A stretch of 64,000 bases of DNA, taken from assembly GCA_964188305.1 (NCBI GenBank), contig OZ076889.1; one strand, 5' to 3'. Source of the DNA: Podarcis bocagei. Taxonomy: Eukaryota. Under the pieces are notes generated by a model. That model was not told the DNA's origin. It was given only the letters and a program-made list of their open reading frames with translations, and searched no databases. Position numbers and translations under genes: made by a program. Below are positions 16,233 to 27,849 of this stretch, in pieces (the stretch's first letter is position 1; each line of letters begins with the position of its first letter).

Positions 16233-16412
16233 AACCCAGAGATGCATTTTAAATAAAAGCACACATTCTACTCATCTAAAAACACCAGGCAGGCCCAACC
16301 CAGAGATGCATTTTAAATAAAAGCACACATTCTACTCATCTAAAAACACCAGGCAGGCCCAACCCAGAGATGCATTTTAAATAAAAGGACACATTCTACT
16401 CATGTAAAAACA
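16233..16412. repeat. 64-bp tandem repeat (~2.8 copies) inside a probable hAT-type element ending near 16490
   Basis: Unit aacccagagatgcattttaaataaaagcacacattctactcatctaaaaacaccaggcaggccc starts at 16233, 16297 and 16361. Confidence 0.9.
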
Positions 16413-17990
16413 TGCTGATTCCTGGACCGTCCACAGGCCAGATTTAGAAGGCGATTGGGCTGGATCCGGGCCTTAGTTTTCCTACCCAATGTGTTATACT
16501 GTTTGCACCTGCAAATGTTTCAGGGTGGACATACAGCAAGCTCCATAATTTCCTAGTAAAATTCTGTGACCTTTTTATACCACAAATGTCCTGGTTATTT
16601 TTTTTTATAAATTGTGGCTGCGATTGGGCAAAAATGTGCTTAAATAATAAATGAAGGACCTCTTCAATAGTCCCCAATAGACTGGGAAACTATGTAACAT
16701 GACCTTTAAATAACTTTTCCATCCAATATATCATCATTAAAACATTATTCAGCACATCTCAAAGAAAGAGAAATTAACTTTCAAAGCTTTCATTTAGATG
16801 ATGGGTTTAAAAGGAGTTTTCAAACTGGAAGGAAAATTATCCTGTTTAGTTTCAGGTCTATCTCACACAAAATTAACATTTAGTAGATTGAATCCACTCT
16901 ACTTCAAAAGTAGTGCTATTGTGACTGATACTCTTGTACTGCATCACATAAAGGAACTATCTTCCGAAGTTCATGTGGAAATTGAATTTATGTCACTTTT
17001 TTTTTAAAAGGCTAACAGGAGAAACAGAGCACTCTCCACTTCAATTGGTTGTGTAGCCAGAATGCTTTCACTAGTATGCTTGTGTTGGATTTGGTTTGGT
17101 AAAAGGAAAAATACCAGGTATAATAAAAAGAATTCCCTGGATGCCTAAGATACAAGTTTGGAGAAAGTACTCTTTGTTGAGAGAACCCCAGCAGAGATTT
17201 AAAATCACAAAACATGCAGCAAGTAAAGCACGGAAATATAGGCTGTTAGATCTTTAAAATATCCCCTTCTAACTTGTTTCCAAAGTTCCCCACTTCCCTT
17301 AGCAAAGAAGTTATAAAAGTGTTTCCTTACAAATTCTTCAAGGGTCCAATTCATGAGCTTTTCCATACAGAAGTCAGAAAACACAGATGGTATAACTTAG
17401 GTTCCAAAATGGTAAATGTTTCTAAATTATTTGTATAGAAACACAAAAAATGGCTTGCTTAAGCCACTCAGTCTGCATCCAGTTTAGACCTCCTTACTGG
17501 TAGGGTTAACATGTTGGAAGGGAGAGAACGAAGACTTGATAATCCTTCCTCCCAAGGTGACGAGAAGTGGCCTAGCTAGGCCTGGCAGGTCAGCTTACTC
17601 TGTGGTCTATGAGGTTGGATATTTCACAGCTTGGGCATACAGTATTGGGTTGGATCCAGACTAAGTCAGTTGATGCTTCTCTTTGAATTCAATAAGTCAA
17701 TGCTAAATTGTCCCTTTGATTTCAATGGAACCTAAATTCAACTAACTCCATCTGGATCCAATCTTTTCTTTTCTTTTCCTTTACGACTGCTTTTATCAAT
17801 GTATGAATGGGTTTAAAATGATAGTTTCATTTGAACTCTGGTATAAATCAGATACTTGGCAGATGTTATCAGTACAGAACAAAAAACCCATTTCAGATTG
17901 GGCTCCACACCTGCAGGAATCAGTGTTTGATCTGTGAAATTGGGCCAAATCAATTCTAGGCATTCTCAGAGGTTTTGAGATCCTGGTACA

Positions 17991-21752: not shown

Positions 21753-24630
21753 ATTTATTTGTAGCATTTTAAACAGCCATTTTAAAAGCCTAACTAAGAT
21801 TGCTTACTCATAACAAGGAATGACTACTTTGTTGGTCTTCAGGCTTAATGGCTGTGTGGTCAGGCAACGTGCCTTCTCTCTGTGTTGTTGTCTCTTCATT
21901 TGCTAAATAATACTTTGCATAGCTTCCATGACTCAATGGTTTTCAAACGCTTCACCTCTCCACCCTGCCTTGGAAAAGACTGCACTCCATTGCACACCCA
22001 TGACATATATTCTGGGCCCCTGAATGTCCCTGGATTCAATAACACTTAGACATAAAGCAACAACTAGTGTGCATTAGCTGGGCTGCTAGCAATAGAAAAC
22101 ATTATCTGTCATGATCCCCCACAGAACATATGAAAATATTGCACAACGATACTGACTGCAGTTAAAGATAAATGTCGCTTTCATTTTTAAACTCACTATC
22201 ATTTGTCCAGCCAAAATATCAGTCTCCCAAAACAATAGTACAATACAAGAGCACAACACATTCATCTAATTTCACCAGACATCACCCTGATCATTCACAA
22301 TACAGACTTATAAGGGGGAACTTGCAAGTAAGATTCTGCCCAGTTGTTTAATTACTCTTCAGCAACTCCACCCCATTGCTCAGTAATACATCTTTATAAC
22401 CTGCTTCTTCCAGTTTCCTTGCACCAGGTTGGCAGACAGGCAATGTACTTTTATTTATAATGTTATATCCAATAGCTATCCAGTATTAGTCATACCCAAA
22501 GTACGTCCAGTGAAATCAATGGACTTAAATCACTTGTCATTGATTTCAATGGGTCTACTCTGAGTATGATTTAGGTATCACCCAACATGTATTATCTATT
22601 GATCATGGATGTGGAACACTCCTGGCGCATTGCTGGAAATGAAAAGTGGGATACATATGTTTGGAGATGGGAAAAGTAAATATATATCATAGATAATTCA
22701 AAGATTTTTTTTTATCTATTTAGACCCATTGACTCTCTTGGCAAGTTTTGTTCTCTCGTCTTGTTATCTGTTCCTCCATTTGGTATTGAGCAACAGCAAA
22801 TCCTTAAAAGCCAAGGGGGAGGGGTGATTCTCTAGCAATGCCTAACAATTGGCAGCAGCAACGAAACAAAGCCCTCTAGTCTTTCTAAATATTTATTTAA
22901 AAGCAGGCTGAAAGCAAACACTTCATTTTTCAAAGGCTAGCAGATTCTCCTGTATTGGAGTGGCAATAAGGGAACATTTGCTTTCAGACTTCCGAGTTAA
23001 AAGCCACACGCTCTGAGACCTCACGCATCTCTCCTCGGTTCCATGCCAGCTGCAATAGTTTAAACATCTCACTTAATCCATATGTATGTACTAAGACATC
23101 TTACACATCTCCCAACCACATGCAGATTTGCATAACTTGCATCCAGACATGCATTACTTTTCCAAAACATGAAATTAATAGCTGTCTTTGAACAAAAAAA
23201 ATAAATGGCTGATTGAATGAATGACAGGGTGAGGGTCTTTTCCTTTTTCCATTATTATTTTTTTACCTTGACACATCTGTTAGTATATCAAGCAGAGGTG
23301 AATGCCATTCTGTACTTTGCATGGATATGGTTTTTCCTACTGTGAACCAAACTCTTCACATCTCTCTATTTTCCAGGCAAAGTCAAACAGAGGCTACAGG
23401 CTTCCAAACGTCCTTAAATATTAGCTATTAATAGTGCTGGTTTCAGTATATTGCAAACTTCTTGAGCCATTTCTTCAATGTTCAAATAGCATAAGCTTTT
23501 TTAAAATAATAAAACCAAAAACTTTCAGCACATTAGGCCTAGGAACCAGATGGTGCAATTGTTGAGGAGGAGGCAGCACAATCGCAATGCTTGTTACCGT
23601 AACTCTGTGCGAGTAAGTGGGTAAGATGGCGAGGCATCTGAATGAAGAATGAGTGCGAACAAGTTTGTATGTGAAAAGTATAAATTGGAAACAGCCGCAG
23701 AAGATTCTACAAACAACAAAATGCATCTATGTATTCTTGTTGGCCTCTCCTTGTATTTACATAAATGCAATAGCCATATATTTGATGCTTTCACAAAACC
23801 ACAAATTATTGTATGGGAATACCAGACCGTGGTGACAGCAGACCACCCACGTCAGACAATGGAATATTTTGTTCCTGGAGAACATTTAGCCTGATGTCAC
23901 TCCAATGTAATGTATTCTCAACTTCAAGGATAAATTGGTCATCTGAGTCACCTTTCCCTGCCCCGCTCCAATCTTTTTCAGACAAAAAATTCTACTCAGG
24001 AGAACTGGTGCTCCTTAAGTGTTGGTCTAGTTTCTACCTGCTCAAGAGGTTTCCAGTGTTGACCACAAACTTGTCCTTGGAAGAGAAAATACTTACCTTT
24101 CCCAAGCAATGCCTGGGTCTTCCTAGTTCTGCAATATACCATGAACAGGAAGTGTGTAAGGCCACCCTTTGGATGAGCTCTGAGCATGGCTGGCACATCA
24201 CTGAGGTGACCTGAAGCAGCCTGCCTTAGGTAGCATGCTCTGCAGGGGGCAGGAGATTCCAGTTGAACCCGTGCTGCCACTTCCACTTATTTTCTTCCAG
24301 CTGCTGCCCCTCTATGGTCTTGGCAACAACAACTTCCAATTCAGATTCAGGTAAGCTGAAGATGCACCCAAAAGCCAAAGTCAGGAAGAGCAGCAGCAAT
24401 GCTTCGTGGAACACCTCCCCCTTTCCGCCAAGACTCTCAGACAAAAGGGGCATTCCCACAGAGCAGCTGCATTGCCACTGGTCTTCCACCTTTAGAGGAG
24501 CAGGGAAATTAGCAGCAATGCATTGCAGAATGCCTCCTTTTCAGCAAGTAGGATCATCTTAATAGATGGTCCTGGTTGCAGGCAGGCCCTCAACCTGATC
24601 CCCACCACCACCACCACTCTCATGCCAGGG

Positions 24631-25312
24631 TGGCACAGATCACCCAGGGTTATTGCCCAATCAATTTGAATGGGTGATCGTGGGGGAATGTATAAAAGCG
24701 GCAGCACGACGTGTGCCAAGCACCTGCTTCACGCTGCTGAACACCCGCCCACCCTCCCTTTAATTTAAGTGTCCTTTGGCCTTGCTTTGGACTTCGGTTG
24801 GTTGCCCGTCTTCGGTCGGGGACCGGGTAGGAATTTTTCCATTTGGCAAATTGGCACGGGCCACTTGGTTTTCGCCTACCTCTTAGCAATCGTCACAACT
24901 TTGTAAGGTTTGGTGGCTAGGCATTGGCTTATTGTTGAGTGGAGGAGGGGAGATCGGCCATTGCCTGCCCCTCTATTGTTCAAGGGTATTCCGTTAAAGG
25001 AATCCAGGGCCTGGATCTGGTCTGAAGTCTGCTTGAAGGGCTAGGGCCATGTCAGGCCTCTGGGAACACCAGGGGAGATGCAGGCAGGTTCCCCCAAAGC
25101 AGTTTCCCTTTCGGTGGTTTACCCTTACAAACTTCCTGCAAGGGGGGTAGGAGTCAGATATAGTATTTTGCCAATGCCTAAGCCAATACCATTCTCATTT
25201 CCTGTAATCAATAAAGTTGTGGCCAAAAAATTTGCCCGCCAACCTTAAAGAAAAATTCTGTGTCTGTGTGAAATTCTATATGCTAATGGGGGTTGGCTTA
25301 AGGGTCTTGCCA
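24631..25312 (+). mobile_element. LTR-like terminal repeat unit (DIRS/Ngaro-like or solo LTR; family uncertain)
   Basis: TGGCA...TGCCA ends, CCAAT 24657-24661, TATAAAA 24691-24697, AATAAA 25210-25215, GT-rich tract 25259-25270; retains CpGs unlike its flanks; no TSD. Confidence 0.6.
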
Positions 25313-25408
25313 TGCAAGACAGCATTGCTGTTGTTCTCCTCTCACCCCAACAAGGTGTGGGCCTGGATTTGTGAGGGAGCATTGGCCGGGTATATTGACT
25401 CAGGAGCC

Positions 25409-25449
25409 ATTATTATTATTGTATTATTATTATTATTATTATTATTATT

Positions 25450-25495
<46 letters not shown>

Positions 25496-25511
25496 CAACA
25501 ACAACAACAAC
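25409..25511. repeat. (TAT)n then (CAA)n microsatellite, tail of the adjacent L2
   Basis: Direct reading. Confidence 0.95.
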
Positions 25512-26170
25512 ATTTCTTTACCACCCTTCACCCGAAGATCACAGGATGTTTTACAATATAAAAACACAAACAAATACAGCATAATAACAAACAAAAACAA
25601 TTCCCCCATAGGCCATAGATTGTTTAACTACCCAAAGGCCTGGAAGAAAATGAATGTTTTTGTCTGGCACCTAAAGATATGTAGGCGACAGGTGAGCCTC
25701 CCTGGGGAGAGCATTCCACAAGCAGGGAGCCACCACAGAAAAGCCCTGTTCTCATGTTGCCACCCTCCGAACCTCTCTCAGAGGAGGCACATGGAGGACC
25801 TCAAATGATGAACACAGCATCTGGGCCGGTTTATAAGGGGAGAGGCAGCCCTTGAGGTATTGCAACCTTGAGCCATTTAAGGCTTTATAAGTCAAAACCA
25901 GCACTTTGAATTGGACCTGGAAACTAACTGGCAGCCAGTACAGTTGGGCCAGAATTGGCGTTATAATCCCAGTGAGCAGCCAGGCTGAATTCTGCACCAG
26001 CTGAAGTTCCTGAACCATCTTCAGAGGCAGCTTCTAGATGTCACCAAAGCATAGATTAACAGATGCTAGACTATCCCAGTCCAGATATGGCGAAAGTGGG
26101 CCACCAGTCGGAGTGGGTGGAAGGTACTCCATCCCACTGAGGCCACCTGAGCCTCAAGTGACAGCAATGT
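25512..26170 (-). mobile_element. L2 LINE 3' fragment
   Basis: Minus-strand ELQLVQNSA...ITPILAQLYWLPVSFQVQFKVLVLTYKALNG (25752-26018), typical of the L2 ORF2 end. Confidence 0.85.
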
Positions 26171-27849
26171 AGCCTGACTGTATCATGTTCAAACTGTTGG
26201 GTTTCTATCAGAGCTGGGAGAGCTGTAACCTTCCACGCACTGTTGGACTCCATCTCCCATCTGCCCCAGCCACCATGGCCAAGGGGCAGGGATGCTGGGA
26301 GATGGAGTCCAACAATACCTGGAGGCCCACAGCTTCGTCACCCCTAGTTTAAACTTCAAAGGGACAATGCATTTACACTTTAAAAATGTGAAGTATGAAT
26401 GTGACAAAGAAGTGTTTTTAAACACAGATAAACATACTGGTATACTTGGCCAGAGAGCTGAAACTTGGGTATGGGTCCCTGTTCAGTATGCGCTTGGTGA
26501 AAATCTGGGTGTTGCTATTGGAAATGGCAGAAAATAGGCATTACTGCCTTCATGTCTACACTGGTCGCACTATTACCTCTGCAGCAGGCTTTTGGTATTA
26601 TTTAATAAACCAGAGTGAACAGTGGGACAAAAGGTGCCCTTATCATGCCACACCCAACACTCATCATCTGTTCTACTTGAGATTGCAACTTCATTTCCAG
26701 AATGTTATCTCTAAACGGTTGAGACTTCTTAGTCCTTGCCAATATTATAATTATCCTGCCCCAAGCAGGATATTCTCTGGTAAATGGCAAAACACTTCTT
26801 TTAGCTCTCAAGAACAAAAGGTATAGTAATTAAAGCTTATTATACAGATTGGGGGGGGGGGTGCGCGCGCGCATGTGTAAAAATCTGGGTCAAATTCCAA
26901 CTGGGCAACATATGATCTTAGCCAGAGGAGGAGTGTAAAAAGTTCCTAGCAATGCAGAGAAGCACTGCAGAATCTAGATCAGAAACATATGTGCTTCGAA
27001 AAGATCCCAACAACAGTAGAAAAAAAACCACTGGATGCACGTTACAAATATTCCCACTGCCAAAAGGTGGGGGAGGAAGAATGGAATAAACAGGCGAGGG
27101 GATTTTTAAATATATTTTTTTTAAAAAATTGAGAGAATAAATTTGTTCAATCCTTTTGCATTATATGAAGTGCTGCATCTATTTTCTCAGACGTTTCTAT
27201 GTGGCCTGATCCTATAACTTCTTCCTTGTAAGTAAATCCCAGTGAGATCCACAGGAGTTATTCCCAAATAACCAGGAACAGGATTGCAGCCATTTAGCAT
27301 GATCCTAAACATCTTGGTGAATTACTGAAAAATCCATGAGATATTGGGTGCATATACACTAACCTGTTTGTCACAATAAAATGCAGCTCTTCTCAATCCG
27401 GGATAGTTCATCCTCAGCTTGCTTCTTTGAGTCTAAATTGAAAGTGTTGTTCTTAAAATTATTAGGATCTTGCAAATAGTGATCCTACTGAAATTAGACT
27501 CTTTTTCGACCAGTGCAAGCTACTGGGAAAGAAAGCAGTAACAGCTGGATAGAAATATCAGCTAGAGAGGATGAAAATGGGACTCTTTTATCTAGATGCT
27601 TTTATAGTATGCTTTGAAGCACTCTGTAAATAAAACGTGATATGTATGCTTTTTTGTTTTGTGTTTTGACTGTACTGTTGTAGTACTTGTAACATTGTAG
27701 TCATCTCCATAGTAGACTTTTGCTCTTTTTTGTTATTTAATTCATTCATTCATTAACTTTTAGGATGTTTTACTGGGCGAAGTATACTTTTCAGTACAAC
27801 ATATCATGATTTACAATCCATCATATTTCAGCTTAATATAGTGGCCTTT

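Follow-up and report, generated by a model that had tools for sequence, protein, structure and literature searches.

A conserved sense-strand RNA fold with ENE architecture in an LTR-like repeat unit of the lizard Podarcis bocagei

Function of ENEs has been demonstrated for the herpesvirus PAN RNA, for MALAT1/NEAT1 and for a small number of plant transposons. The ENE of KSHV PAN RNA is composed of a stem, facing U5-type tracts and a stem-loop, with G-C pairs adjoining the U tracts, and is situated upstream of the poly(A) site of an intronless RNA. In the MALAT1/NEAT1 ENE, U-rich motifs are able to clamp an encoded A-rich tract.

Plant and fungal elements carry ENEs within or next to their LTRs (PMC13541005, PMC7583470), and their proposed role is to protect the poly(A) tail of the element itself (PMC12501189, PMC13541005). 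They are mostly double-domain and are found in hAT, Copia and Gypsy elements. In the rice TWIFB1 double ENE and in Arabidopsis Evade (Copia93), a hairpin with a U-rich loop lies in the 3' untranslated part or in a terminal repeat, and the G-C pairs flanking the Evade ENE are reported to be essential (PMC12501189). Among vertebrates, MALAT1-like triple-helix/mascRNA loci have multiplied in anole lizards according to Zhang et al. (2017), as cited in PMC10869381, and a 2020 review mentions stickleback retroviruses in regard to ENEs. The literature searched yielded no functional demonstration of an ENE in an animal transposable element and no paper in which ENEs or triple helices are connected with DIRS or Ngaro elements. 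Ngaro elements have the full layout A1-ORFs-B1A2B2, and solo AB repeats have also been described (PMC8547959).

The window analyzed here, a stretch of 64,000 nucleotides from Podarcis bocagei (assembly GCA_964188305.1, contig OZ076889.1), contains at 24791-24882 a fold of the same stem, U-rich internal loop and stem architecture. Its parts, with the hairpin that precedes it, are as follows.

24800-24824, + strand: hairpin 1, directly 5' of the ENE-like fold (folding, alignment)
24826-24831, + strand: 5' strand of the lower stem, GGUAGG, pairing with 24875-24880; invariant in most subfamilies
24832-24838, + strand: 5' strand of the internal loop, AAUUUUU; AA and at least three U kept in all subfamilies
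24839-24868, + strand: upper stem-loop, composed of CCA/UGG, a 2x2 internal loop, UGGC/GCCA and a 12-nt apical loop with AUUGGC
24869-24874, + strand: 3' strand of the internal loop, UUUUCG in the window copy and UUUUUG in most copies
24875-24880, + strand: 3' strand of the lower stem, CCUACC (sequence, alignment, RNAalifold)

An earlier note, made from the letters of the window, had placed an ENE-like motif here within a retroelement-like unit. On re-reading the sequence, every feature that it listed is found at its position on the + strand: the lower stem GGUAGG/CCUACC, the loop strands AAUUUUU and UUUUCG, the pairing of CCA (24839-24841) with UGG (24866-24868) and of UGGC (24844-24847) with GCCA (24860-24863), and AATAAA at 25210-25215. 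The architecture is real, the minimum free energy fold of 24791-24882 is the structure that had been drawn, and the stretch does lie within a retroelement-like repeat unit. Two CTTCGG sites upstream of the fold, at 24792-24797 and 24810-24815, are likewise where the note had them, but they do not hold as a conserved feature: the second is private to the window copy and reads CTTGGG or CTTGAG in other copies.

Similar to the PAN ENE, the lizard fold runs from a stem through facing U tracts to a stem-loop, has G-C pairs next to the U tracts on the upper side and lies upstream of a poly(A) signal. On the upper side, C24839-G24868 and C24840-G24867 adjoin the U tracts directly. The main differences from the PAN ENE are that the lower stem, with its closing pair G24831-C24875, is set apart from the U tracts by an AA in the 5' strand and a G in the 3' strand; that the upper helix is only 3 bp, in most subfamilies, before a 2x2 loop intervenes; that the U tracts range from 3 to 7 between subfamilies; that AATAAA is ~330 nt away; and that the triple helix is, in the lizard element, a prediction. 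Across the copies the loop reads GG-AA-UUUU, then U, UU or GU, then CC on the 5' strand, and GG-UUUU, then U or C, then G-CC on the 3' strand. In most copies U5-7 faces U5, and in family K only UUU faces UUUU. Variants of the 5' U strand among the subfamilies include UUUUGU, UUUUUU and UUUG, the first of these, with its interrupting G, being that of the abundant family B. On the 3' side, UUUUCG is seen in some lineages and in the window copy, whose tract UUUUC differs by a U-to-C change from the UUUUU of most family-A copies.

Comparison with the plant and fungal ENEs gives a similar picture of likeness in form and difference in setting. As in TWIFB1 and Evade, a hairpin with a U-rich loop is found in what resembles a 3' untranslated part or terminal repeat; the lizard fold is single-domain, however, and belongs to a vertebrate and to a unit without TSD. 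In addition, TWIFB1 and Evade are known from experimental demonstration of function and the lizard fold from sequence comparison. The U-rich motifs also recall those of the MALAT1/NEAT1 ENE, which act together with an A-rich tract, and an encoded A tract near 25250 was considered as a partner of the 5' U strand. The match is perfect in the window copy and is lost in subfamilies C, F and G, in which, unlike at MALAT1-like loci, the downstream A-rich tract is not complementary. A canonical AATAAA stands in place of the RNase P site of those loci. Because no tRNA-like structure follows, a MALAT1-like module with mascRNA is ruled out: ARAGORN detected no tRNA-like structure in 24000-26000, and Rfam gave no mascRNA or menRNA match.

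The single-sequence energy of the fold is unremarkable. For 24791-24882 the z-score is -1.5, and 20 of 200 shuffled sequences fold equally well. The predicted probability of the ENE-like fold in the window copy is 0.12 in a context of ~520 nt; when a ~500-560-nt region of other copies is folded one copy at a time, it ranges from ~0, in a family-B copy whose upper stem is mutated, to 0.97. Rfam 15 returned no family match for 24791-24882 at E-values up to 10, and an E-value scan of 23500-26500 returned only microRNA-like matches on a nearby palindrome and none on the motif. It is therefore because the fold is kept across copies (17 copies, 9 subfamilies), and not from its single-sequence energy, that it stands above chance.

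The comparison that establishes this used actual copies from nine subfamilies (A, A2, B, C, D, E, F, G and H/I); families J and K were read from printed matches only and stand outside the alignment. Across the nine, conservation within the unit peaks at 24820-24900, with values of 0.93, 0.81, 0.97 and 0.92 per 20 bases as compared with 0.4-0.8 elsewhere. The dip within the block falls in the apical loop, and conservation extends beyond the hairpin to ~24910. Internal-loop nucleotides are conserved as well as the stems. RNAalifold, unaided, predicts the same stems on the 119-column alignment of the motif and the same fold on the ~540-nt region 24722-25262 (15 copies). When the structure of the earlier note is taken together with the upstream hairpin, 97.7% of pair cells hold standard pairs, as opposed to 33-52% when partners are slid by 1-3 columns, and none of 500 shuffles reached the observed pairing or covariation score.

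Several changes preserve pairing. The sixth pair of the lower stem is divided evenly between G-C (8 sequences) and G.U (8 sequences), and the upstream hairpin contains several G.U pairs. Since such frequent G.U pairs are workable only on the + strand, the constraint acts on the sense RNA rather than on a DNA palindrome. In the inner helix of hairpin 1, the third pair (alignment columns 10-22) is C-G in some subfamilies and U-A in others. In family K, CCA-UU-UGGC / GCCA-CU-UGG is replaced by a continuous helix, in undecayed form CCACCGGG / CCCGGUGG, in which one U-A has become G-C and two mismatches have become C-G and apical AAUUGGC is retained. The helix is also kept in subfamily E, where most of the apical loop is deleted, and in subfamily D, where that loop is scrambled. 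In the lower stem, six pairs are near-invariant, with almost no covariation; the seventh shows five pair types, although an alternative partner column fits equally. One subfamily has GGCAGG opposite CCUUCC, which produces a C x U mismatch. The compensatory variant GGAAGG...CCTTCC of the earlier note is not supported, as CCTTCC in this genome faces GGCAGG. From this comparison of copies, a conserved RNA fold with ENE architecture on the sense strand is real.

The fold lies in the 3' part of a repeat unit, the window copy of which belongs to family A.

24544-25317, + strand: repeat unit, family A copy, ~775 bp, with boundaries from 29 other copies
24544-24738, + strand: promoter-like 5' part with CCAAT at 24657-24661 and TATAAAA at 24691-24697; differs between subfamilies
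24892-24902, + strand: 5' strand of helix a, pairing with 25214-25223 and so overlapping the last two bases of AAUAAA (inverted repeat, RNAalifold)
24907-24928, + strand: 5' strand of helix c, pairing with 25170-25190 (inverted repeat, RNAalifold)
25170-25223, + strand: 3' strands of helix c (25170-25190) and helix a (25214-25223), flanking AATAAA at 25210-25215
25259-25271, + strand: GU-rich run downstream of AATAAA, overlapping a CR1-like ATTCTGTG octamer; kept in other subfamilies

In most of the fetched copies, homology extends from 24544-24551 to 25312-25317. A genome search with the unit gave 6067 first-look candidates, and the best 40 scored are 83-91% identical to the window copy, which is an old, decayed solo unit. 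Read from motifs, CCAAT, TATAAAA, AATAAA and the GU-rich run, a run that may serve as a downstream polyadenylation element, are laid out in an LTR-like U3-R-U5 order. The octamer ATTCTGTG and the related octamers that come after it at 25254-25283 are similar to those repeated at the 3' end of CR1 LINEs, but here they stand ~35 bp short of the unit end and not at the end. Beyond this octamer near 25254, no trace was found of the link to CR1 3' UTRs that the earlier note had suggested.

The modular nature of the unit is seen in family B (~815 bp; 3929 candidates in the genome search), whose 3' part is common to family A from ~24739 onward, down to and including the terminal CACGCAA. The first ~200 bases of family B have no detectable similarity to family A. 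One locus has a head-to-tail junction of a B unit with an A unit, an arrangement that is rare among the best matches. In the 48 copies of the two families that were compared, no TSD of 3-10 bp is present at any offset, the ends are not inverted, and the sole recurrent end match is the element's own CAA at both ends.

A classical LTR, such as the solo LTR of an ERV, is ruled out by the lack of a TSD and of a common internal neighbor: the flanks share only unrelated common repeats, and a recurrent string after CTTGCCACGCAA, considered as a possible internal region, is a chance 12-mer within a young LINE-like repeat from which the unit is absent. That LINE-like repeat (L071:1-4010, L072:7-4035, L074:45-4075) is 99% identical between loci, and in L072 and L074 it has open frames of 861-874 aa with an endonuclease-like N-terminus. 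A hAT DNA transposon was likewise rejected, as an 8-bp TSD (<=2 mismatches) is seen in at most 2-4 of 22-26 copies at any offset and the ends are not inverted. One flank that looked like a unit with internal sequence, at L066, is in fact a segmental duplicate of L065 with a 189-bp deletion that removes the last 189 bp of the unit. These two subfamily E copies, at 5.82 Mb and 5.89 Mb of C2, are 98.8% identical over 1.1 kb including their flanks.

By its anatomy, the unit is probably, though by no means surely, a solo AB repeat of a Ngaro-type tyrosine-recombinase retroelement. Similar to the solo AB repeats of Ngaro elements (PMC8547959), it is an isolated LTR-like unit with no TSD and a CAA core at both ends, and its 5' part differs between families and its 3' part is common to them. 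Unlike complete Ngaro elements, which carry reverse transcriptase and tyrosine recombinase, it is known from solo repeats. Should this assignment be correct, the unit's 3' part would correspond to the 3' UTR of the complete element, and the fold would lie within it. Open reading frames for an SGNH hydrolase (Lipase_GDSL_2) are highly repeated in the genome (1706 candidates), and among the matches listed none lies within 10 kb of a listed unit. Most of the scored SGNH-hydrolase matches are on contig C19, many with an identical score, as in a large amplified array.

Other features were noted in and around the unit. Four of the 29 other family-A copies (L008, L010, L024 and L025) have an insert of a few hundred base pairs just before AATAAA (~25185 of the window), and in three of the four the insert is the same ~345-bp repeat, which also occurs alone elsewhere; this points to a subfamily or to an insertion hot spot. 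A long (ATT)n microsatellite at 25395-25495 lies ~80 bp downstream of the unit. The palindrome matched by Rfam, an 84-nt near-perfect one at 26236-26319, hits the mir-5408 and mir-4716 models on both strands below gathering scores and more closely resembles a MITE-type inverted repeat than a microRNA gene. At 16233-16424, a 64-bp unit is repeated three times in tandem, two repeats being identical and the third 81% alike.

The two long-range helices link the vicinity of the fold to the poly(A) region. Both are conserved in all 15 copies examined (RNAalifold), with pairing in 99.3% of cells for helix a (30-50% when slid) and 96.3% for helix c, the overall range for slid partners being 18-50%. 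One pair of helix c switches between U-A and C-G among subfamilies. As modeled, helices a and c would bring AAUAAA and the cleavage region to a distance of about a dozen nucleotides from the fold's base, a docked geometry that would suit a clamp on the tail and control of the poly(A) site equally well. The sequence GCCAAT occurs twice at 25170-25187, and an RNA contact between this strand and the apical loop is possible.

Expression was sampled in three bulk RNA runs and one single-cell run that carry the same species label, with reads matched at 85% likeness. Nearly all reads are <90% alike and lie only partly on the stretch, and they are piled only on 24808-24909 and 25148-25249. Since they are less than 90% alike and confined to the two most conserved blocks, they derive from diverged relatives. 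In the four runs no transcript of the window copy or of family A and no poly(A) junction was detected, depth elsewhere in the unit being ~0, and in these samples both the window copy and family A appear to be silent. The bulk runs do show expression of a diverged relative of the unit, with the first mate mostly on the + strand, which would mean antisense RNA if the library is a standard stranded one.

The best single mechanism for the fold is a clamp on the poly(A) tail, a plausible reading that we hold tentatively. It would concern transcripts of active source elements. The 92 bases belong to an RNA fold maintained by selection, in the part of the TSD-less, LTR-like unit that resembles a 3' UTR. 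Transcription would start from the TATA box and cleavage would take place after AATAAA. From the base upward, a 6-7-bp stem, facing U tracts and a stem-loop make up the ENE architecture. With AAUAAA and the cleavage region brought back beside this base by helices a and c, the two U tracts would contact A residues and form a U.A-U triple helix that clamps the poly(A) tail or else the A run where cleavage occurs. Such a clamp would slow deadenylation. As read from sequence, the conservation, the sense-strand G.U pairs, the rebuilt upper stem of family K, the invariant loop, the flanking CC/GG and the docking helices speak for this mechanism; the Rfam result, the z-score of -1.5, the probability of 0.12 in the window copy, the short or broken U tracts, the AA and G next to them, the 3-bp helix, the C x U mismatch, the scant covariation of the lower stem, the ~330 nt to AATAAA and the RNA result speak against it. 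The fuller proposal, that a Ngaro-type vertebrate lineage carries a working single-domain ENE with its poly(A) site docked by the two long-range helices, is conceivable and on balance rather unlikely.

Nearly as likely as the poly(A) clamp is another cis-acting role for the same conserved RNA element, in which the U tracts would be a protein-binding or spacer feature. The element's own reverse transcriptase, Gag or recombinase machinery might recognize the fold or use it for packaging, or the fold might help to control the poly(A) signal, for example by allowing read-through of the first B repeat in A1-ORFs-B1A2B2. A role of this kind fits the reach of the conserved block past the hairpin to ~24910, the retention of apical AUUGGC while its stem changes, and the latitude in U-tract length. 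Control of the poly(A) site would also be expected to show pairing of the type seen in helix a, which begins at the last two bases of AAUAAA. A role other than the clamp accounts less readily for an internal loop whose facing U runs are near-invariant in most subfamilies and whose flanking G-C pairs are as in ENEs.

An improbable alternative places the conservation on the DNA, as clustered binding sites for transcription factors that lie downstream of the TATA box, with RNA pairing incidental. The candidate sites, which we take to be of the NF-Y and NFI type, are the Y-box-like CTGATTGGCT (an inverted CCAAT box) and TTGGC half-sites. The apical loop (24845-24856) holds ATTGGC, ATTGG is found there in most subfamilies, and family B has the Y-box-like CTGATTGGCT (L031:1843-1856); yet subfamilies D and E lose or delete ATTGG with the stems kept, and the G.U pairs and compensating changes preserve pairing on one strand only. 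Also improbable is a chance look-alike hairpin without function, conserved through the shared ancestry of the copies. It would agree with the single-sequence z of -1.5, the mostly invariant stems and the thin covariation, but against it stand the high conservation of the block between subfamilies with diverged neighboring sequence, the upper stem rebuilt in family K and the collapse of pairing when partners are slid.

If the poly(A)-clamp reading is true, the fold would give animal transposable elements their first demonstrated ENE, and protection of the poly(A) tail as a transposon counter-measure to RNA decay would extend to vertebrates. It would also be a compact natural RNA-stabilizing module, and its thousands of copies could lend stability modules to host transcripts or alter their stability. 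If the function differs, the fold still marks the key cis-element of this repeat family, and with the helices around the poly(A) signal it offers a tractable model for polyadenylation-site choice in split-repeat elements.
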